Assembly: GCA_002269645.1 (NCBI GenBank)
Contig: NIVC01000469.1
Span: 1-64,000, forward strand
DNA length: 64,000 nucleotides
Direction of reading: 5' to 3'
Source of the DNA: Macrostomum lignano
Taxonomy: Eukaryota
The translations under genes and the position numbers were made by a program. Of this stretch, positions 38,834 to 62,938 are shown in pieces. The notes under the pieces are model-generated. The model did not search any database and was not told the origin of the DNA. It was given only the letters and a program-made list of their open reading frames with translations. Numbering within the stretch: the first letter of the stretch is position 1; each line of letters starts with the position of its first letter.

Positions 38834-41271
38834 ATGTCTGAGCAAGACGGCTTGCTTTCTTCGCGCGCTAATGCGAGCTACTCAGCCACTGCTAGCCCAC
38901 ACTCCGGTGCTGCAGAAGCCGCCACGGTGACCTTCAACAGTGTGAGATATTCTCTGCTCATCCGACGCGGCCCGCCATGTTGCTTTCCTCCGGAGCGAAA
39001 GGAAATCCTGCTCGGAGTTAGCGGCGTGTTTCAGCCTGGCATGAACGCCGTGCTGGGGCCAACAGGTTCGGGTAAGTCCAGCCTCCTGGATGTCATCGCC
39101 GGACGAAAGAACCCGCAGAATCTGACTGGCACCATTCTGATCAATGGCGAGCCGCCGCCGAAGAATTTCAAATGCGTCAGCGGCTACGTTGTTCAAGAGG
39201 ACGTTGTCATGGGCACGCTGACAGTGCGCGAGAACCTGCTGTTCAGTGCGGCTCTCCGACTTCCGGCAAGTGTCAGCCGGTACGACCGAGGCAGACGCGT
39301 CGCGGAGCTGCTGGACCAGCTGGGACTGACCGGGGTAGCCGACAGCCGCATCGGGACGCAGCTGACTCGAGGCGTCTCTGGCGGCGAGCGTCGACGAACC
39401 AGCATCGGAATGGAGCTCATCGCCTCGCCTAAAGTGCTGTTTCTGGACGAGCCGACGACTGGTGAGAAAGATCGAGATGTTTTTTGGACTGCTGCTGGAT
39501 ATCTAGGATTTCTTAGAAAACCATTGTTGATATTCTTAGACTGCGAAAAGCCGATAAGGTCGCAATCTTCTGTCAAGCAGAACAAGCATACGCTCGTAGC
39601 CATATGAGATCGATGCTGTATCAAACCTAAGACACTCTTGTCGATATGCAAATGCAGAGTGCACATTGCGCTAACTACTCCTTCAACTAAAATTCCGTCG
39701 AAGCTTTTTGGCTTGCCGATTTTGATTGATTTAAACAACATTCCAAAGTCTTCTAATTCCGTATTATAAGAACTACCACGATTTAAACAACATTCCAAAG
39801 TCTTCTAATTCCGTATTATAAGAACTACCACTCATTATTTTCCTCTCTCGGCTCAGGTCTTGACGCCAGCACTGCCAACTCGGTGATGCGGATTCTAAGG
39901 AACATCTCGCGCCGAGGCACAACAATCATCTTCTCCATTCATCAGCCACGCTACGAAATTTTCAAGACATTCGACTCGCTGACTCTGCTGTCTAAAGGTC
40001 AGATTGTCTATCATGGTGACAGTGTCACTTCGCTTGACTATTTCCAGCGCCTCGGCTACGTCTGCGAGATGCACAACAACCCGCTTGATTTCTACATGGA
40101 CATCTTGAGTGGCGACGCGAGACCAACTGAAGTCGATTCAGCAGCGGTGAAGGTTAACTTTGATCATCAGGACAGTGTTCAAGGATGGCTTGTTGCGACG
40201 TATCAGGTAAAAATCAGAATGATTTTAAGTTGTTTTTGATGTTTACAACGCAACTATTGTATTCATATACGAGGTAAATTGCACCACGCGAGCACATACT
40301 CGCCTTTGCAGGGCTCCGAGGTGTGGCGCGACGTCAACGCTCGAATCGCTCCGGTTTTGGAGGCTTTCAGCAATCGCCAAATGCGGGGCTACCGACCGCA
40401 GTCGACAGCAAATAATCCGACTTACCAGACGTCGTTTTTCCGCCAGTTGGCCGTCGTGTCACAACGGGCAACAAAAAATCTGCTGCGGAACCCGCAAACG
40501 TCCATAGCCCAGCTAGTGCTCAACGTTCTGTTTAGCGTGCTTGTCGGCCTCATCTACCTGCAGATACCGGCTGACACGATTTCCGGCGTGCAGAATCGAG
40601 TGGGCGTGTTCTTCTTCACCACAATGAACATGGTCTTCGGCAACATGGGCGCTCTGGAGCTGTTTCTGCACGAGCGCACCATATTTGTCCACGAAAGCGT
40701 ATCTGGTTACTACCGCGTGTCCGTGTACTTTCTAGCTAAGGTGTTCTGCGACCTGATACCAATGCGACTTGTGCCTCTGATGCTGTACTCTCCTATCTCC
40801 TACTTCATGATCGGTTTGAATCCAAGGTTGGACAAGTTCTTTGTGTACTTTTTAAATCTGCTACTGGTTTCAATGGCCGGTTCGAGTTTGGCCTTCTTCC
40901 TTAGCGCCACAGTTTCGGTGTTCGCCATTGCTACCATCTTCCTGGCGCTGTCATTCGTCTTCATGATGGTGTTCGCAGGCCTGCTGGTGAATGTCTCAAC
41001 AATGGGAGAATGGCTGAGCTGGGCTAAGTACCTCAGCATCTTCCGGTACAGCATGAACGCGCTGAGCATCAACGAGATGAAGGATCTGCAATTCTGCAAC
41101 GAAACAGCTAACATCTGTTTCGATCTCGGCAACAAGTACTTAAGCGACCAGGGAATTCCATACGAAAACGAAATAGACTTGTGGATCAATGAAATTGCAC
41201 TGGGCGGCTTCATTTTTGGATTTCTGGTGCTAGCTTACGTCCAACTTCGTCGGTCCGGCAAGTTTAGGTAG
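38834..41271 (+). CDS. ABCG2: ABCG2-like (White family) ABC half transporter, ~645 aa
   Basis: join(38834-39461, 39857-40206, 40312-41271) = 1938 nt. Walker A GPTGSGKS, signature VSGGERRR, Walker B VLFLDEPTTGLD, H-loop SIHQP, then a six-TM domain with ESVSGYY. Confidence 0.93.
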
Positions 41272-52045: not shown

Positions 52046-53892
52046 ATGGGCAGTCGCGATGCAGCCGATCAGAACTTTGACTACATGTTCAAACTGTTAA
52101 TTATTGGCAACTCATCTGTTGGCAAGACCTCCTTCCTGTTCCGGTATGCTGACGACTCCTTCACATCCGCCTTCGTGTCCACTGTTGGTATCGACTTCAA
52201 AGTGAAGACCGTTTTCAGACAGGATAAGCGCGTCAAACTGCAGATCTGGGTGAGTGCGGATCGGGGACTGTTTTGGAAACTATCGTCAAAATCCATGTCA
52301 GGGTTTTGGATATTCCATGCCAGGGTTTTGGATATCTCATGTCAGGATTTTGGATATCCCATGTCAGGATTTTGGATATCCCATGTCAGGGTTTCAGATC
52401 CCATGTCAGGGTTTCGGATGTCCCATGTCAGGGTTTTCGATATCCCATGTCAGGACTTTAAATATCCCATGTCAGGGTTTCGGATCCCATATCAGGGTTA
52501 TGGATCCCATGTCAGGATTTTGAATATCCCATATCAGGGTTATGGATCCCATGTCAGGATTTTGAATATCCCATATCAGGGTTTTGGATCCCATGTTAGG
52601 ATTTTGAATCCGGGGATCAGGATTTTGAATCCCATGTCAGGATTTTGTATCCAATGTCAGGATTTTGAATATCCCATATCAGGGTTATGGATCCAATGTC
52701 AGGATTTTGAATCCTGGGATCAGAATGCTGTTTTAAATGTGCTTGAAAACGGATAAGTGCAAAATCTTTTCTCCGCGTCATTTTACTCGCCGATTAATTT
52801 CCCCAATTTTTTCCCCAAACTTTTCCCTAACCCAGAGCTTTTGCTTTCTCTCTTCCGCGCATTTTTGTTCTCCGCTCCTCCCCCACCTTGTGCTGAGCAA
52901 AGCGAATTCCTTTTTTTCGACTGAGAGGGGGAGAGAGAGAAAGAAATAAAGTGCACAGCAACTGTTAACGCCATGCTTTCCACTGTCAGTAGGGTTACTA
53001 GAGTAGTTATGCAGCAAACAGAGCAGCATTCGGCCGACGTGGAGGTGGGTGTGTTGGCTGAGTGCTCTCGCCATGCGTGGTCAAGACCATGTGCCGATCA
53101 CAGCTGCTCTGCGAGATCCGCAGAGAGGGGAGGGGAGAGAAATGGGGGGAGACAATAGGCTATTGGAGTATAACGGTAAGTCCAAAAAAGGTTCGTTGTA
53201 CCTTCTCTAATACCATTTTTGTGTGCCTTGTGTGTCAGCTGTCCTTTCGGACTTTGAAGGGAATTGGGAGAGTGGCCCTGGAATGGTATGGTATGGTATA
53301 GGTTAGTATGGTATAGTTTGGAATGGTATGGTATGGGTTAGAATGGTATAGTTTGGAATGGTATGGTATGGGTTAGTATGGCATAGTTTGGAATGGTATG
53401 GTATGGGTTAGAATGGTATAGTTTGGAATGGTATGGTATGGGTTAGAATGGTATAGTTTGGAATGGTATGGTATGGGTTAGAATGGTATAGTTTGGAATG
53501 GTATGGTATGGGTTAGAATGGTATAGTTTGGAATGGTATGGTATGGGTTAGTATGGCATAGTTTGGAATGGTATGGTATGGGTTAGAATGGTATAGTTTG
53601 GAATGGTATGGTATGGGTTAGTATGGCATAGTTTGGAATGGTATGGTATGGGTTAGTATGGCATAGTTTGGAATGGTATGGTATGGGTTAGTATGGCATA
53701 GTTTGGTATGGTATGGGTTAGTATGGTATAGTTTGCAATGGGATGGGTTAGTATGGTATAGTTTGGAATGGTATGGTAATTAGCGACAGCTGAGCTACCC
53801 ATATTCAGGCTCTCCGCGAGCATACTATCTGTGAGTCTGTGGCCCGGACTAATTCCCAATCAGTAGGAGCGGGAGGAGCTCTCTCTCTCTCT

Positions 53893-53972
<80 letters not shown>

Positions 53973-56900
53973 TATCCCTTTCCCTTTTCTTTTCCAGCAT
54001 TGGGCTTATTTCCCAATTTCCAGCCGCATCTAGCCTGCCCGCAGCTATTTGAGGATGGTCCGCTCCACATCTCTCTTTTTTGTCCAGCTTCCCTCGGCCT
54101 CATCACTCGCTGACAATCCTGGAGATCCTCCCGCACCCTTTGCTAAAGCTACGTGTGCAGGAGGATAAATGCTGTGCCCCCCTGCTCCCCATTTTCTTCT
54201 CTCAGTGCACACAACCCTCATTTTCCCACATTTCCCATCCCATTACTGAGCCCGGTGCCTTTTCTCGCTCCCGCTCCCCCTGAGTGTCGTATTACCCGGG
54301 GTCGCTTTGAGCTGACTCTGCAGCAAGCTCGACTGCTCTCTTTTACCCTCTTTTGCCTGCGACTGCTGTCCCTTGTTCCAATCTGTACCTCCTAGGCCTA
54401 TAATATTGGCACAGCCTGTAATTAAGGTGTTTACACTACCTGTCAGTTTTAAAAGTACTTGATAATACTCTTATGTAAGTTGGACATCGATGTTCTGATC
54501 CGCTTCCACTGAAGTGAATATTTTTTTCAAGTGCTTTTTTAGCTTTTTGATTATTTTTTCCGACTTTTCTACCCTCCGCCTCCCCTATGCTCTCGTCTCA
54601 TATTTTCTCCTCTTATCCTCTCCTCCCCTCTCCTATCCTTTCCTCCCTTCACCTCTCATATCCTCTCCTCTCCTTTCCTCCCCTCTCCTCTCATATCCTC
54701 TCCTCTCCTTTTCTCCCCTCTTCTCGCATATCCTCTCCTCCCCTTCTCCTCTCATATCCTCTCCTCTCTTCTCCTCTCCTTTCCTCCCCTCTCCTCTCAT
54801 ATCCTCTCCTCTCCTCTCCTCCCCTCTCCTCTCATATCCTCTCCTCTCCTTTCCTCCCCTCTCCTCTCATATCCTCTCCTCTCCTTTCCTCTCATCTCCT
54901 TTCCTCCCCTCTCCTCTCATATCCTCTCCTCTCCTTTCCTCCCCTCTTCTCGCATATCCTCTCCTCTCTCCTCTCCTCTCCTCTCCTCTCTCCTCTCCTC
55001 TCCTCTCCTCTCCTCTCCTCACCTCTCCTCTCCTCTCCTTTCCTCTCCTCTCCTCTCCTCTCCTGTCCTCTTATCTTATCTTCTTCACTCTCCCCTATAT
55101 TTTCTACTCTTCTCTCTCCTTTCTCATCTCTACACTCCCTTTTCTTTTTTCTCTCTTATCATGCTTCCCCTCCTTTCTATATCAATTCCTTCCATTACAT
55201 TAACTGACGTTATTAATCAATCATTGACTGAGTATCTACTGCTTCCTGTATTTAAATGTCTTTAAATGTTTTTTGTCTCTACGATTTTTGTAAACTCTCA
55301 GCTCTCAATTCATTTTGTTATGACAGACTTACTGCTGAATTCTGTTATTCTATTTCTGCATTTTTATACTTTTCAAACAAAGGACACCGCCGGCCAGGAG
55401 CGCTACCGCACAATCACCACCGCCTACTACCGTGGCGCAATGGGCTTCATTCTGATGTACGATGTCACCAATGAGGAATCGTTCAATGCTGTACAAGACT
55501 GGTAAGTTTACAGTGGCTGAGATGTATCGTACGCATAATTCATTTAATATTGTAATATGAGAGTCGGTGGCTATAAATAACTCGATTTGTTGTGTTCATA
55601 GTAACAGGTTAAAAGAGGACATCATTACTGAGTGCACTGACGCTCTGCAGACGCGTCTGACTTTCGCGACACGATCCCTTGGTTTGATGTGTGCAGCCAC
55701 ATTCATTTAGGGCTTGTGTGCGCGGAAATTGTACTAGGGGATTGTAGTGGCGCCCTTGTACCTCTTGTACCAATAAATTTTTTTCAAGTGCTTTTTGTTT
55801 TTTGATTGTTTTATCCAATCTCTTCTCCTCTCCGCCTCCCCCTATCCTCTCCTCATATCCTCTGCTCTCCTCATATCCTCTGCTCTCCTCATATCCTCTG
55901 CTCTCCTCATATCCTCTGCTCTCCTCATATCCTCTGCTCTCCTCATATCCTCTGCTCTCCTCATATCCTCTGCTCTCCTCATATCCTCTGCTCTCCTCAT
56001 ATCCTCTGCTCTCCTCATATCCTCTGCTCTCCTCATATCCTCTGCTCTCCTCATATCCTCTGCTCTCCTCATATCCTCTGCTCTCCTCATATCCTCTGCT
56101 CTCCTCATATCCTCTGCTCTCCTCATATCCTCTGCTCTCCTCATATCCTCTGCTCTCCTCATATCCTCTGCTCTCCTCATATCCTCTGCTCTCCTCATAT
56201 CCTCTGCTCTCCTCATATCCTCTGCTCTCCTCATATCCTCTGCTCTCCTCATGTCCTCTGCTCTCCTCATGTCCTCTGCTCTCCTCATGTCCTCTGCTCT
56301 CCTCATGTCCTCTGCTCTCCTCATGTCCTCTGCTCTCCTCATATCCTCTGCTCTCCTCACATCCTCTGCTCTCCTCATGTCCTCTGCTCTCCTCATATCC
56401 TCTGCTCTCCTCATATCCTCTGCTCTCCTCATATCCTCTGCTCTCCTCATGTCCTCTGCTCTCCTCATATCCTCTGCTCTCCTCATGTCATCTGCTCTCC
56501 TCATATCCTCTGCTCTCCTCATATCCTCTGCTCTCCTCATATCCTCTGCTCTCCTCATATCCTCTGCTCTCCTCATATCCTCTGCTCTCCTCATATCATC
56601 TGCTCTCATCTCCTCTTCTCCTCATCTCTCTTCTCCTCATATCCTCTGCTCTCCTCATATCCTCTGCTCTCATTTCCTCTTCTCCTCATCTCTCCTCTTC
56701 TCCTCATCTCTCCTCTCCTCATATCCTCTCCTCTCCTCTCCTCTCCTCTCCTCTCCTCTCCTCTCCACTCCTCTCCTCTCTTCACCTCTCCTCTCCTCTC
56801 CTCTCCTCTCCTCTCCTCTCCTCTCCTCTCCTCTCCTCTCCTCTCCTCTCCTCTCCTCTCCTCTCCTCTCCTCTCCTCTCCTCTCCTCTCTTCACCTCTC

Positions 56901-59900
56901 CTCTCCACTCCTCTCCTCTCCTCTCCTCTCCTCTCCTCTCCTCTCCTCTCCACTCCTCTCCTCTCTTCACCTCTCCTCTCCACTCCTCTCCTCTCCTCTC
57001 CACTCCTCTCCTCTCTTCACCTCTCCTCTCCTCTCCTCTCCTCTCCTCTCCTCTCCACTCCTCTCCTCTCTTCACCTCTCCTCTCCTCTCCACTCCTCTC
57101 CTCTCCTCTCCTCTCCTCTCCTCTCCTCTCTTCACCTCTCCTCTCCACTCCTCTCCTCTCTTCTCCTGTCCTCTCCTCTCCTCACCTCACCTCCCCTCTC
57201 CCCTATCCTGTATGAGCTCAAGAGTCAGCGTAATGGTCAGAATTGCCGTCAGTGCTGGCTGTGGGTCGATTGCGCCAGGGTTGCATGCATGGCCTCCATT
57301 AATAAAAATTGCAATGTGAAAGATATTTTAAGTCTTCAGTCAAAAAGTATCCAAATCTGTCAGTGAGGCTTCCTGGTTTTTGTTATTGATGCCATATCAA
57401 TGTTCAAGTTGACAAATAAGATTTGCTGGTCCAGCTGTCCAGATCTGCATTAACGCTGTTCCGCAACAAACCGCCTACGCATTTTTAATGGCCATTTTTT
57501 TCATAAAGACTTAAGAATCAGTTGACGGTGTGGAATGCGTTGGAACGTTAGAAGTTGTGTTGCTATTCATAGTAACACTGCACTACGGTATGCGTGGACT
57601 GTTTTTGGGAACGAAAATCGATTTTAAATTCATTTGCACTTTTTTGTACAGCAGATACGGTAGATATTGTGTCTTTCTCCCTCTCTCTCTCTGCTCAGTC
57701 TGATCTGGTGAATTTTGACCTGGTTTGATTTTTTTATTTAGCATATTTAAAATATGAACTGCGTGTTTTTGCTAACGGGTTTTGTTTGAAATTGATTCAC
57801 TCGTCGCCAATTGTGCGGGTTTAGTTGTGCAACTGGGTATGGCATTGGCAGGTGTGGTATTGCGTTTGGAGTAGGATGTGGCCTTTAGCTTCGGGTTTGG
57901 GATCACGTATGGGATGGGACTCGGTTTTGAAATGCGAGGAGTGTCCCAAAAAGTTCCTGGAATATTTGCTTTAGCTCAGGGGTCGGCAAACATTTTACTT
58001 CAAAGGCCAGAATCTAGATCATTGCTGCTGGCCAGGTGAGAGTGAAAATTGGAGATAAAATGGGGGGGGGAGAAGAAAGAGGAGATGAGAGGAGAGAAGA
58101 AAGGAGAGAGATGGGAAGAGAAAAGAAAGGTAAGGAGATGATAGGAGAGAAGAGACGAGATGAGATATGAGGAGAGAGTAGAAGAAAGAAAAGAGAGAGA
58201 GCTGAGAAGACACACCAACCTCAAGCGGGCCGGATTGCTATTGCAAAGTTTCAAAGGACCCGAGAGCCGGATAGAGAGGCTTCGCGGGCCGCATGTGGCC
58301 GGCGGGCCGGAGTTCGTCGACCCCTGCTCTCAGTATCTTGAATACCTGAAAACTGAAACATACTAAAAAAACTATTAAACAATGAAACTGAACAGTGCAT
58401 TCACCGCTAGTCAGTCATGGTGGCATTCGCAAGTCAAAATTGCATCCTAATCGGCAAGCTGAAACTACAGCTTGAGAAAAAGATGCTCAGCAATTTTGGC
58501 TCCAACTCTATCGTGCAGACTGCAGGGCGAAAACTTGACTCCGCTGACTCTCGAGGCATTGATGTCAGAAAAGACACCACAAAGGTTAAGATAATAGGGG
58601 GTTTCAGCCTAGTGGTTAGAGCGTTGGAGTCACGACTAAGAAGTCGGGGGGTTCGATTCCAGATCCCACTCGGAACAATTTGTGTCCTTGAGCAAGACAC
58701 TTAACCCTGCATTGCTTCAGTTCACCCAGCTGTAAAATGGGTGCCAGCATTAGCTGGGGTAATTCAGGGTGTGTGGCGACCCCCCCCCCCATCCAGTCCT
58801 TGGACTGAACAGCCGTACGCAGCCTTCAGATCCGCCACGCAATAGCTGCGGCTGAGCTGTCGGTTGCACCATTGACCATACTGCCCATTAGGACAGTATG
58901 GTCAATTTTTAATAAAAAATTAAGATACTGAGCTTACAACTAGAGCAAACATTTCGGGAACTTTTTTGGACACCCTCGTAACTGTGTCGAATTGGGTAAG
59001 GCTTACCAGATGTTTGCCTCTGTGTGGGTCATAGTGTGGTACTGGGTATGGGTTTTTAACCAACTAACACACAAGTCACTTTTCAATACAGTTTTTATAG
59101 TTTTGTAAAACTATCAGCTTGTCACGCATATTTATACCATAAAGAGAGTCTTGTAAGATAATTCGGTCAAGACGAGAAGGCAGTACTCTGACAACAATAT
59201 AAAAATCATGCAGGGTAACGGCAATCCAGACGCACTCTTGGTCCAACTCGCAAGTGGTGCTAGTTGGCAACAAGAGCGACTTAGAGGACGCTCGGGTTGT
59301 GTCCACCGAGCGGGCAGCCAGACTGGCTCGCGAATTGGGTTCGTTTTAGCTGTTGCTTGCTCTGCTGCTGCTGCTGGAGAGAGTGCTGCTTTTAGTAGAA
59401 AGACTGAACAAGTTTTAAAAGCAAGAGCTAGCATTTACCGCGGCAGCTTGTCTATCCCTGTCGTGGAAGTTTTAGTCACAATATTCATTCACCTGCATGG
59501 ATTCTATGACGTCACTATTATTATGATATACCTGCGGAGCAACGAAAGCGCCGGGGCCACATAGTCTAAACGTAGCCTATGCTGGTGACTTAGTCACAGG
59601 AATAAGTTATTATATTGAATCAATTTTATAGTTTAGGTTTTGTTTTAATCCTAAAACGGCTAAAACGAGAGCTCTTCTACTAATGGGACGTCATCGATGT
59701 ATTTATTCGTCATACAAGATATTTCCAAACGAAATTTAACTTAACTAGACAACGGAGTGCGTGCACTTTACTACGTCTGTCTTGTTCTCTATTTAGAGTT
59801 GTGCAAAACGTATTTATTTCAATTCATTCGCGATTTCTATACTTTTCCTAATTCTGTTCTTCTTTGTCCACTCGTTTCTGCTACCTTTTGTTGCCAAATT

Positions 59901-62900
59901 TTCTTCGCTCAACAGTTTTATTTACCTTGTTTTGAAATTTTTTAGGGGCCATAGTTAGGATGATGTATAAAGGTCTGGGTTCTGCCAAAGTTGCTTTCAA
60001 TATATGCTTCAAACAGTTTAAAGTGTGTTTATAAAATTCTTTAACCGTTAGACCTAAAACGTTAACAACTATTTAAAAGCCTTTTCTGGATTTTTGTATG
60101 CATTCGCAAGAATCACGCTTGAATATAACGAAACACTACAGGTGCACCCAGATAAAGACTTATTCGTGGGACAATGCGCAAGTGATCCTAGTTGGCAACA
60201 AGTGCGACTTGGACGATGAGCGGGTTGTCAGCACAGAGAGGGGAAAACAGCTGTCTGATCAGCTTGGTAATTGCCCTATTTCTGGACCAACTCGTAACGT
60301 TTTCAACGAATAGTTTTTTAACCATAGCGTTCCACCTTGTTTAAGTAGCAAAATGTGTCATTGTGATCGTTTATAGTATTCGTAGTTCAATGGCTGTGTC
60401 CGAATTGGATCAAAAGGCAGCGAACCCATCTACCAGTTCTTCTCAATTTGTCTACGAATCATTGCAAAGCTGAATAACTTTGGTCGGAATTTCAACTCTC
60501 ACCCTTTATTTCTATCCACTACAGCCAAGTTTTATAGCTTTGGGCTAGTGGGGTGGGTGATTGTTATTGATTCTCTGGTCGGCCCATCAACCCCCACCTT
60601 TCTTTTCTATCCACTGTAGTCCGGTTTTATAGCTTTGGGCTAGTGGGGTGGGTGATTGCTATCGATTCTCTGGTCGGCCCATCAACCCCCACTCCTTTCT
60701 TCTCTACCCCCTGTAGCCCAATTTTATAGTTTTAGGATAGTGGGGTGGGTGATTGCTATCGATTCTCTGGTCGGCCCATCAACCCCCACTCCTTTCTTCT
60801 CTACCCCCTGTAGCCCAATTTTATAGTTTTAGGATAGTGGGGTGGGTGATTGCTATCGATTCTCTGGTCGGCTCATCAACCCCCACTCCTTTCTTCTCTA
60901 CCCCCTGTAGCCCAATTTTATAGTTTTAGGATAGTGGGGTGGGTGATTGCTATCGATTCTCTGGTCGGCTCATCAACCCCACCCCTTTCTTCTCTACCCC
61001 CTGTAGCCCAAATTTTAGGGTAGTGGGGTGGGTGATTTTGTTATCGATTCTCTCTGGTCGGCCCATCAGCCCCCGCCCCTCTTTTCTATCCACTGTAGCC
61101 CAATTTTATAGTTTATGCTAGTTGTGTGGTTGACTGTTCTCTGGTCGGCCTATCAACCCCCCCTTTCCGCCCCTTTCTATCCACACTAGTCTATTATAGC
61201 TATCGGCTTAGCACATTTTCATAAGCCAATGTTATTATGCTTTGTTATGATCTAATACAAAGAGAAAGAATTCGTTACATTCTGTCTACCTGTATTCAAG
61301 TACAGCCATTTAGCGTTTATTATCCAAAGTGTATTTATTTCCTTGGAATATAGTTTTACTGTAGTTGGTGACTGTCTTTTAATTTGCCTAGTTTACCGCA
61401 TTCCTGTTGTTTATAGTATTGTACATTGTGCAACTGCCTAGTAAATGTTAAAATTAAAAGCTATCCTTTTTTGCACGGGTATCTTATGATTATTAAAAAA
61501 ACATTGTCCCTTTCACCAACTAATCAGAAGTTTTAAAAAACAGTTTTCAAATTTCCCGATAATTAAAGGGAATAATAAGAAGACTCAGAAAGGGTTATAT
61601 AAAAAAATTACCTGATTAATCATTAATGTTACAAGGCTTAGCTCTAGAAATTCCTTTTTGCTGACACAACCGTTACTATTTTAGTCAATGTCGTAAGTAT
61701 GCGCAACTTTCTTTTTTTCCTTGCTAAAATATCTTTTAGCTGCACAACTTTCAGTGGCTTTAATTTTTTCTATCCAATTTTTAAACTGTTACCCAAATTT
61801 GGTGTTGTAAAAATAAACGACTTACCTGTGCTTATAAGAGGGAAATGGCAAGTATAATGTACAGCAATTAAAAATGCATTTATAATTATGGAATCAACTG
61901 CTCAATTCCAACACTTGCAATCCTCAGGCCTAGAGTTCTTTGAGACCTCTGCCAAAGAGAACATCAACGTCAAGGCCGTGTTCGAGCGCTTGGTAGACAT
62001 CATCTGCGAGAAGATGTCCGAGTCCTTGGACAGCGACCCCAACATGATGCACAACACGGGTGAGTCCTCCCCTCACCCAGGGGAAAGCAGAGCATCCCCT
62101 GTGCTCTGCTTTTGTATAACTGCTCCCTCCCTCCCCTATCTCACCATCTCCCTCTCCCTCCCCTGTCTCACTATCTACCCTTCTATCTCCCCTGTCTCAC
62201 TATCCACCTCTCCCTCCCCTGTCTGACTATCTACCTCTCCATCTCCCCTGTCTCACCATCTCCCTCCCCCCCCCCTGCCTCACTATCTACCTCTCCATCT
62301 CCCCTATCTCACTATCTACCTCTCCATCTCCCCTGTCTCATCCTCTCCCTCTCCATCTCCCAGTCTCACCATCTCCCTCTCCCTCTCCCTCTCCCCCATC
62401 TCACCATCTCCCTCTCCCTCCCCTGTCTCACCATCTCCCTCTCCCTCTCCCTCATCTCACCATCTCCCTCTCCCTCTCCCCCATCTCACCATCTCCCTCT
62501 CCATCTCCCCATCTCACCATCTCCCTCTCCATCTCCCCATCTCACCATCTCCCTCTTCCTCCCCTGTGTCACCATCTCCCTCTCCCTCTCCTGTCTCACC
62601 ATCTCCCTCTCCCCCCCCATGTCTCGTGTCACCTTCTCTCCCTCTCCTGTCTCACCATCTCCCTCTCCTGTCTCACCATCTCCCTCTCCCCCCTGTCTTG
62701 TCACCGTCCCTCTCCTGTCTCACCATCTCCCCTCCCCCCTGTCTCGTCACCTTCTCTCCCTCTCCTGTCTCACCATCTCCTTTATAATCTCCCAGTTTCC
62801 GCCCTATTATCGCAGTTTCACTCTGTCCCAAGTTCGCCACTCGCACAGTTAACCAAACCCAACCCGATTGCTGAACTCTCGGCAGGCAACCGGCTCGAAG

Positions 62901-62938
62901 GCTTTGAGCAGCAATCTTCCTCCGGCTGCAGCTGTTAG
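52046..62938 (+). CDS. Rab3: Rab3 small GTPase, 210 aa (canonical isoform using exon 3b)
   Basis: join(52046-52249, 55383-55501, 60142-60266, 61928-62059, 62886-62938) = 633 nt. [51 protein letters not shown]-terminal GCSC* prenylation motif. Confidence 0.96.
52302..52712. repeat. ~22-bp degenerate minisatellite (ATCCCATGTCAGGGTTTTGGAT)n
   Basis: Starts ~50 nt after the Rab3 exon 1 donor. Confidence 0.9.
53280..53775. repeat. 35-bp minisatellite built from 5-mer GGTAT-like subunits
   Basis: Unit GTATAGTTTGGAATGGTATGGTATGGGTTAGAATG. Confidence 0.92.
53879..53968. repeat. (CT)n microsatellite
   Basis: Direct reading. Confidence 0.97.
54590..55075. repeat. pyrimidine array of CCTCT / CTCATAT units
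   Basis: Direct reading. Confidence 0.9.
55850..57205. repeat. 18-bp array (CTCCTCATATCCTCTGCT)n followed by (CCTCT)n
   Basis: Period of 18 to ~56600, then 5-mer; source of the 469-523-aa pseudo-ORFs. Confidence 0.96.
57977..58326 (+). mobile_element. hAT (Charlie-like) MITE with an internal GA-rich tract
   Basis: TIR CAGGGGTCGGCAAAC / GTTCGTCGACCCCTG; subterminal GCGGGCCGCATGTGGCC; no clean TSD. Confidence 0.8.
58594..58919 (+). mobile_element. tRNA-derived CORE-type SINE, apparently full length
   Basis: A box AGCCTAGTGGTTAGAGCG, B box GGTTCGATTCC (58650-58660), CORE-like GTGTCCTTGAGCAAGACACTTAACCC...CTGTAAAATGGG, 3' 13-bp stem-loop (58871-58906), A-rich end, candidate TSD TTAAGATA. Confidence 0.82.
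59214..59338 (+). CDS. Rab3: Rab3 alternative exon 3a (tandem duplicate of exon 3; candidate mutually exclusive exon)
   Basis: CAG|G ... TTG G|GT, 125 nt with the same length and phases as exon 3b; no stop; encodes (W)[41 protein letters not shown](G). Confidence 0.85.
60530..61190. repeat. ~97-bp tandem repeat, ~7 copies, in Rab3 intron 3
   Basis: Period 60721/60818. Confidence 0.93.
62125..62780. repeat. pyrimidine-rich array (CTCACCATCTCCCT variants) filling the last Rab3 intron
   Basis: Direct reading. Confidence 0.9.

Follow-up and report, generated by a model that had tools for sequence, protein, structure and literature searches.

The Rab3 locus and its two copies of exon 3

Rab3 has a core regulatory role in the release of synaptic and secretory vesicles, and its choice of effectors presumably depends on the RabCDR pocket. 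The DNA analysed here (the window) is a stretch of 64,000 nucleotides (nt) from the flatworm Macrostomum lignano (assembly GCA_002269645.1, contig NIVC01000469.1, positions 1 to 64,000 of the forward strand), and it contains on its plus strand a whole Rab3 gene of six exons, two of which are tandem copies of exon 3, termed 3a and 3b. These copies are read here as a functional, mutually exclusive exon pair that arose when Rab3 exon 3 was duplicated in tandem long ago, a reading to which a probability of roughly 0.75 is given. A preliminary description of this DNA, made from the sequence alone, had proposed that the two exons are tandem duplicates, selectively kept and candidates for mutually exclusive splicing; this proposal has since gained support from the substitution pattern of 3a, from pairs in other phyla, from RefSeq isoforms, and from one spliced transcript.

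Exon 1 (52046-52249) runs from the ATG to ..KLQIW, is followed by the 5' splice site GTGAGT, and encodes the P-loop, switch I and the FDY motif of RabCDR1. The constitutive exon 2 (55383-55501; DTAGQ..NAVQDW) lies upstream of the pair and ends TG/GTAAGT in phase 2. Next comes exon 3a (59214-59338, 125 nt), the alternative or "TH-type" copy, with the weak 5' splice site GTTCGT; an intron of 803 nt (59339-60141) separates it from exon 3b (60142-60266, also 125 nt), the canonical copy, which the UniProt model A0A1I8HYW9 contains. Downstream of the pair are the constitutive exon 4 (61928-62059) and exon 5 (62886-62938), which ends ..SSGCSC before the stop codon and encodes the C-terminal CXC prenylation motif.

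Each copy has AG directly before it and GT directly after it (..atgcag/GGTAAC...AATTGG/gttcgt for 3a; ..actacag/GTGCAC...AGCTTG/gtaatt for 3b); the two have the same phase and are open solely in frame 2, continuing exon 2. They share 25 of 41 residues (61%) and 80 of 125 nucleotides (64%). Being adjacent and homologous, equal in length and phase, and flanked by intact splice sites, they have the anatomy of a tandem exon duplication. The coordinates, lengths, borders, phases and residue identity given for them in the preliminary description were exact on re-checking, and the junctions that it named, at 55501 and 61928, are correct. A tblastn search of the window with human RAB3A matched 3a at E=7e-13 and 3b at E=2e-19; by these values the similarity to both copies is far beyond chance. 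Peptides derived from the M. lignano paralog described below found no third copy of exon 3 in the window. An origin of 3a as a retro-copy or pseudogene was considered and rejected, as exon 3 alone is duplicated, in place, and with its splice sites present.

With either copy, the predicted product has 210 amino acids and the C-terminus GCSC. It is 77-85% identical to named Rab3 proteins, and its best matches in the PDB are Rab3C, Rab3B, fly Rab3, and Rab3A (E about 1e-97 to 1e-105). The 3b isoform is letter for letter the UniProt entry A0A1I8HYW9, named "Ras-related protein Rab-3" of M. lignano.

Selection on exon 3a and an old Rab3 paralog

M. lignano has been described as a hidden polyploid (PMC10468722). 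Its genome holds an old Rab3 paralog (locus L001, NIVC01003411.1; protein PAA51520.1), with a homeolog at locus L010, in which exon 3 is present in three tandem copies, all bordered by AG..GT. Copy 3x (128 nt; L001 13366-13493, L010 5126-5253) reads RGQAWQGA, copy 3a' (125 nt; L001 13944-14068, L010 5706-5830) reads THSWSTAK, and copy 3b' (125 nt; L001 15260-15384, L010 7022-7146) reads RAHAWHDAT. None of the three is a canonical exon, and only 3b' has been annotated, in the proteins PAA51520.1 and PAA74454.1.

Between the window gene and the L001 paralog, synonymous sites are near saturation, the proportion of synonymous sites that differ (pS) being 0.65-0.85. Exons 3a and 3a' differ at 20 of 31 synonymous sites and at 15 of 92 non-synonymous sites (pS=0.645; the non-synonymous proportion, pN, is 0.163), which gives a ratio of non-synonymous to synonymous substitution (dN/dS) of 0.125 (Fisher p=1e-6). 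The two exons still align as DNA, at 73% over 130 nt, and besides exons 2 and 4 they are the sole part of the exon-3 region that does so; no conserved intronic block was found between the window gene and the L001 paralog. Synonymous divergence between 3a and 3b is likewise saturated. Between the recent homeologs L001 and L010, copies 3x and 3a' together show no difference in 253 nt, and the introns differ by about 1.4%. In the window gene and at the two paralogous loci, 3a has kept its reading frame, its length, and the splice dinucleotides at both ends.

Because dN/dS is 0.125 at saturated pS, and because the homeologs show 0 differences in 253 nt, exon 3a does not behave as a neutral pseudo-exon. 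Purifying selection rather than decay had been suggested for it from the conservative nature of its changes, with a dN/dS near 1 taken as the mark of a dead pseudo-exon; the value computed for 3a and 3a' falls on the side of selection.

Two further observations concern Rab3 and its neighbours in this species. A single-exon gene at L001 23850-24527 encodes a Rab-like GTPase of 225 amino acids, about 40% identical to Rab3, and sits 7 kb downstream of the paralogous Rab3, beyond a RING-finger gene. The UniProt entry A0A1I8HI31 of M. lignano is an annotation error that fuses Rab3 with the neighbouring RING-finger gene.

Residue changes and the effector surface

Exon 3 covers the last part of helix alpha3 and the alpha3/beta5 loop, then strand beta5, which carries the NKxD guanine-binding box, and helix alpha4. 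Structural statements made here come from alignment to solved Rab3 structures and from the papers cited; an AlphaFold2 model of the 3a isoform, built from a 25-row alignment, had a predicted local distance difference test (pLDDT) score of 46 and was used solely for the rough order of helices and strands. Residues are numbered as in RAB3A, and 15 exons of the alternative type were compared with 15 canonical exons.

Canonical exons are 84-87% identical among themselves across animals, and alternative exons are 62% identical among themselves and 60% identical to the canonical ones. The difference is concentrated at a few positions. Position 123 is Tyr in all 15 canonical exons and His in all 15 alternative ones. 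Position 124 is Ser throughout the canonical class and Ala in 13 of the 15 alternative exons, with Ser in Macrostomum. At position 126, Asp or Glu is found in 14 of 15 canonical exons, and Asp never in the alternative class (15 of 15). Gln129 (15 of 15 canonical) is mostly replaced by Ser or Cys; position 142, always Glu or Asp in canonical exons (15 of 15), is never acidic in the alternative ones (15 of 15); and Arg149, again present in 15 of 15 canonical exons, is variable. Neither class varies at W125, G-N-K-x-D, R143, or the hydrophobic core positions. The G4 box reads NKSD in 3a and NKCD in 3b, and the two M. lignano copies also differ on the exposed face of alpha4. From these alignments, the alternative exon removes the conserved Asp and Tyr of RabCDR2 and keeps the fold.

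Residues 123-129 form the alpha3/beta5 loop. This loop (WDN124-126 in fly numbering) is the second RabCDR and holds residues that contact rabphilin (PMC4552854). The three RabCDRs constitute a second interface, which receives the SGAWFF motif of rabphilin, and RabSF3 overlaps RabCDR2 (PMC9308819). Two earlier statements on the M. lignano exons, namely that this loop is a Rab CDR contacting rabphilin and that the exon pair alters it together with the alpha4 surface while keeping the NKxD box, agree with these papers and with the class comparison, respectively. As the class changes sit in the alpha3/beta5 loop (RabCDR2/RabSF3), at position 142, and on the alpha4 face, the proteins made with 3a and 3b most likely differ in their CDR-pocket partners, for example rabphilin- or RIM-type effectors; they would share the GTPase core.

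A different view, possible although unlikely, is that the isoforms differ mainly in nucleotide handling, in their dealings with general regulators, such as GDP dissociation inhibitor (GDI), Rab escort protein (REP), guanine nucleotide exchange factors (GEF) or GTPase-activating proteins (GAP), or in stability, and not in effector choice. The exon also encodes beta5, the NKxD box (NKSD versus NKCD), and helix alpha4. Moreover, Drosophila Rab3 with WDN124-126 changed to AAA was unimpaired in the function assayed at the neuromuscular junction and still rescued active-zone composition (PMC4552854); RabCDR2 is thus not required for every Rab3 function. However, both classes have kept the N, K, and D of the G4 box without exception, and the class-defining changes fall in a surface loop and at position 142 rather than in core or nucleotide-contacting residues, which speaks against this view.

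The exon pair in other animals

The order exon 2, TH-type copy, canonical copy, exon 4 was also found in the bryozoan Watersipora, the chiton Liolophura, and the nemertean Tubulanus. At these three lophotrochozoan loci, both copies are 125 nt long with AG..GT borders, and the intron between them measures 583-2672 nt (803 nt in the window). Homolog and profile searches with the 3a isoform retrieved TH-type isoforms in RefSeq and GenBank from at least 12 molluscs (in the genera Haliotis, Pecten, Mizuhopecten, Ylistrum, Saccostrea, Littorina, Batillaria, Babylonia, Gigantopelta, Patella, and Liolophura), from the brachiopod Lingula, and from Watersipora. Most of these proteins are RefSeq "isoform X2/X3" models, and in place of the canonical segment they carry the pattern ..TQIKTHAWSNA[SC]..D[SAQ]R... 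A 62-amino-acid query centred on 3a matched only short ORF fragments of canonical exons. In the Logan RNA assembly SRR19746222, an uninterrupted open reading frame (ORF) reads through exon 2, the alternative exon, and exon 4; this is direct evidence that the alternative exon is spliced in a mollusc-like animal.

With H123, S126, and A142, and with its place ahead of 3b, exon 3a of the window matches the TH-type exons. It is most likely the Macrostomum ortholog of the TH-type exon of the mollusc, nemertean, bryozoan, and brachiopod isoforms. In the genomes searched, exon pairs that are putatively orthologous and identically ordered were recovered from three spiralian phyla besides the flatworms. 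Judged from these loci and proteins, the duplication is shared across the spiralians rather than peculiar to this gene or species. A side effect of the pair is seen in the over-long "Rab3" models of Batillaria, Nucella, Didymodactylos, and Adineta, which read both exons and are annotation errors caused by it.

Outside this set, sampling was thin and covered a single hemichordate, a single tick, and a single parasitic flatworm, but no annelid. In Ptychodera (hemichordate), Ixodes (tick), and Schistosoma (flatworm), the alternative exon was not found by tblastn at E<=1, and only the canonical exon was recovered. The canonical exon of Schistosoma mansoni (NC_031499.1) stands alone within a 9.4-kb intron, and the alternative one is, from this genomic sequence, either lost or unrecognisable. 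Ixodes scapularis has no intron separating exons 3 and 4, which form one fused exon.

A tandem pair of 125-nt exon-3 copies is found in bdelloid rotifers, too, but there the canonical copy precedes the other; in Adineta steineri these lie at positions 1148-1272 and 1376-1500 of the locus read (L009), with an intron of 103 nt. Because this pair is in reverse order, and because the second copy of Didymodactylos is not of the TH type, exon 3 must have been duplicated on more than one occasion, and the bdelloid pair is probably an independent duplication.

A neighbor-joining tree of 36 exon peptides (41 columns, 500 bootstraps) grouped 3a of the window with 3b in 0 of 500 replicates and paired it with 3a' in 65%. 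Alternative-type and canonical exons were split with 59% support, a modest value on 41 columns that nevertheless fits the shared gene order. The repeated duplication of the exon, visible in the three copies of the M. lignano paralog as well as in the rotifers with their opposite order and the non-TH copy of Didymodactylos, raises the question of whether the Macrostomum pair arose independently of that of molluscs, nemerteans, and bryozoans, with H123, non-D126, and non-E142 reached by convergence; a tree on only 41 residues, with 59% support, would be compatible with this. Such an origin is nevertheless improbable, as four phyla would have to share both the relative order of the copies and all three diagnostic substitutions by coincidence, 3a never joins 3b in the bootstraps, and the synonymous divergence between the two is already saturated. 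A single tandem duplication of Rab3 exon 3, ancient enough to be shared by these phyla, would account for 3a and 3b.

How one copy could be chosen

mRNAs with a premature stop ahead of exon junctions should be degraded by nonsense-mediated decay (NMD). Since 125 is not a multiple of 3, mRNAs carrying both copies of exon 3, or neither, would run into an early stop upstream of later junctions. By arithmetic on the gene model, inclusion of both copies places a stop 11 nt into 3b, which bears out the frame shift that had been predicted for double inclusion, and skipping of both places one 13 nt into exon 4, at a distance of 119 nt from the last exon junction downstream. Productive mRNA would then carry exactly one copy, and both-copy or no-copy mRNAs would be removed by NMD. 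Frame plus NMD would be the simplest means of enforcing exclusivity, as far as this arithmetic and general knowledge indicate.

The choice between 3a and 3b would probably be made by trans-acting, cell-specific splicing regulators acting on two sub-optimal splice sites. The 5' splice sites of both copies are weaker than the GTGAGT or GTAAGT of the constitutive exons, and the polypyrimidine tract of 3a is poor. A single Rbfox motif, UGCAUG, lies 155 nt downstream of 3a; it was not found in the corresponding intron of the other species read, and its position is not conserved. A (CTG)5 run at 59362-59376, which is 24-38 nt downstream of the 5' splice site of 3a, is a possible site for a YGCY-type splicing factor; no run of this kind is present downstream of 3a' in the paralog.

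Two classical mechanisms were rejected. Steric hindrance needs an intron below about 60-80 nt, and the intron between the copies has 803 nt, a length that had already been judged too great and is confirmed. Incompatibility of U2 and U12 sites does not apply, as the 5' splice sites are GTTCGT and GTAATT and neither is U12-like (/GTATCCTT).

RNA pairing or NMD had been put forward in the preliminary description as the remaining possibilities, with conserved docking and selector complementarity in the introns as the sign of the former. No such pairing was found above shuffled controls: the best inter-intron scores were 30-34, and those of shuffled sequences averaged 28-32 and peaked at 36-38, in an ungapped scan which weak or bulged pairings could escape. 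The NMD part of the proposal is in keeping with the early stops of both-copy and no-copy mRNAs. The inverted repeats of the region are mainly (TCTCC)n against (GAGAA)n low-complexity tracts.

There is, however, a candidate 14-bp stem on the plus strand, pairing 59176-59189 with 59380-59393 (span 59176-59393), that encloses 3a and both of its splice sites. The stem is present in the minimum free energy and centroid folds, with z=-2.33 and 3 of 200 shuffled sequences folding equally well. RNA structure is an established device in the mutually exclusive exon clusters of arthropods, and this stem might suggest that docking/selector pairings, or looping out of 3a, enforce exclusivity here in place of frame plus NMD. 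This is quite improbable: complementarities between the introns do not exceed shuffled controls, intronic blocks are not conserved between the paralogs, the stem has no counterpart around 3a' in the paralog, and the fold around 3b is unremarkable (z=-0.56). Frame plus NMD is still the simplest mechanism proposed for exclusivity.

Evidence that weighs against a functional pair

Several points speak against the interpretation of 3a and 3b as a functional pair. A collection of 15 billion public protein sequences does not contain the exact 3a isoform, an exact look-up of the 3a' and 3x isoforms of the paralog in public proteins returned none, and a homolog search found 3a in no M. lignano protein model. 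The 5' splice site GTTCGT of 3a is weak. The separation of the exon classes, at 59%, is modest on 41 columns, and fast-evolving exons may attract each other in a tree. The apparent loss in Schistosoma indicates that the alternative exon can disappear within flatworms, the fly WDN-to-AAA protein rescued the function assayed, and enforcement by NMD is a prediction from arithmetic and general knowledge.

That 3a is a silent relic in M. lignano, no longer spliced in, with 3b alone being used, is very unlikely even so, as the lack of an annotated or assembled product with 3a, which together with the weak 5' splice site, the poor polypyrimidine tract, and the state of Schistosoma would suit it, is accounted for by single-isoform automated annotation, and the dN/dS of 0.125 against a paralog with saturated synonymous sites and the intact frame, length, and splice dinucleotides in the window and at two paralogous loci stand against it.

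Other features of the window

The Rab3 introns are rich in repeats. A 97-nt minisatellite (60525-61114; 6.2 copies, 90% identity) occupies part of the intron between 3b and exon 4, and pyrimidine-rich (TCTCC)n-type and 18-56-nt tandem arrays lie in introns 1, 2, and 4 (54616-55071, 55819-57201, and 62123-62780). These arrays account for strongly negative values of GC and AT skew at 54-58 kb and at 62-64 kb, and they give rise to long spurious ORFs. In intron 2, upstream of 3a, a 34-nt inverted repeat (57941-57974 and 58940-58973; 85% complementary, arms 965 nt apart) may represent the terminal repeats of a small transposable element.

Further upstream, a long open exon on the plus strand (40279-41271) matches the ABC-2 type transporter membrane domain (Pfam PF01061, E=4e-44), which points to an ABCG-like transporter gene about 11 kb upstream of Rab3. 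For the remaining long ORFs of the window, low-complexity pseudo-matches alone were obtained.

Relation to known systems and significance

The closest parallels to the M. lignano pair are the Rab3 isoform models of other spiralians, such as X2 of Liolophura sinensis, Pecten maximus, and Lingula anatina and X3 of Haliotis rufescens. They concern the same gene and the same exon and share H123, non-D126, and non-E142; in the loci read (Liolophura, Watersipora, and Tubulanus), the alternative copy is likewise upstream, 125 nt long, and in the same phase. M. lignano differs from them in that its alternative isoform is unannotated, and in having an old paralog with three non-canonical copies. Its 3a is also more diverged than the mollusc, Lingula, and Watersipora copies, with a V-T-A-I-Q start, S124 instead of A124, and NKSD.

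Echard and colleagues are said to have described in 2000 a mutually exclusive duplicated exon in human RAB6A/RAB6A'. There too, by this account, an internal Rab exon is duplicated in tandem and one copy is used, so that the isoforms share the GTPase core and differ in partner binding. Yet the Rab6 isoforms reportedly differ at 3 residues, against 16 of 41 here, and that pair belongs to another Rab subfamily, affects another region of the protein, and is of independent origin. The arthropod clusters governed by docking and selector sequences, such as Dscam1 exon 6, 14-3-3zeta, and Mhc, are similar in that one of several tandem, homologous exons of equal length is chosen; in contrast to them, the M. 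lignano gene has no docking/selector complementarity above chance and no conserved intronic element.

In the vertebrates, Rab3A, Rab3B, Rab3C, and Rab3D also represent a Rab3 core diversified for different secretory cell types. This was achieved by duplication of whole genes, and all four proteins keep the TYSWDNAQ loop, whereas spiralians would vary precisely that loop by splicing. For RAB37, a substitution derived from tandem exon duplication has been reported as conserved from vertebrates to Drosophila (Martinez-Gomez et al., 2021, PMC8373072). RAB37 belongs with Rab3 to the secretory Rab3/26/27/37 group, and its homologous alternative exons differ in residues that form a surface patch (PMC8373072); it is, however, a different gene, and Rab3 is not listed in that work, where the text string "Rab3" occurs only as part of RAB37.

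The preliminary description knew of no such case for Rab3. To the extent that no description of the Rab3 exon pair was found in the literature this holds, but the pair is spiralian-wide, and automated isoform models of other spiralians already contain the alternative exon. What is new is its unannotated occurrence in M. lignano, its span across phyla with a constant order, the residue signature, and the paralog with three non-canonical copies.

A bolder proposal, which is improbable as it stands, would see in the pair a splicing-encoded effector switch of the stem spiralian, probably Cambrian or older, whose isoforms are matched to different CDR-pocket partners, with RIM-I and RIM-II, or rabphilin and RIM, as candidates. 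RIM-I and RIM-II are both retained in molluscs and in Lingula, and RIM-II has been lost repeatedly elsewhere (PMC7456537). A link between the exon pair and the two RIM genes is speculative.

For genome annotation, the pair flags recurrent errors, in which both exons are read into one protein or, as in M. lignano, the alternative isoform is missing. If the bolder proposal above is true, spiralians would diversify exocytosis by splicing where vertebrates used the Rab3A-D gene duplicates, and the three-copy Macrostomum paralog would represent a further expansion of this splicing code. With RabCDR2 rewritten for what would be hundreds of millions of years in several spiralian phyla, the exon pair may constitute a natural experiment on the role of this loop, and M. 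lignano, being transgenic-capable, would be an animal in which that role is open to testing.

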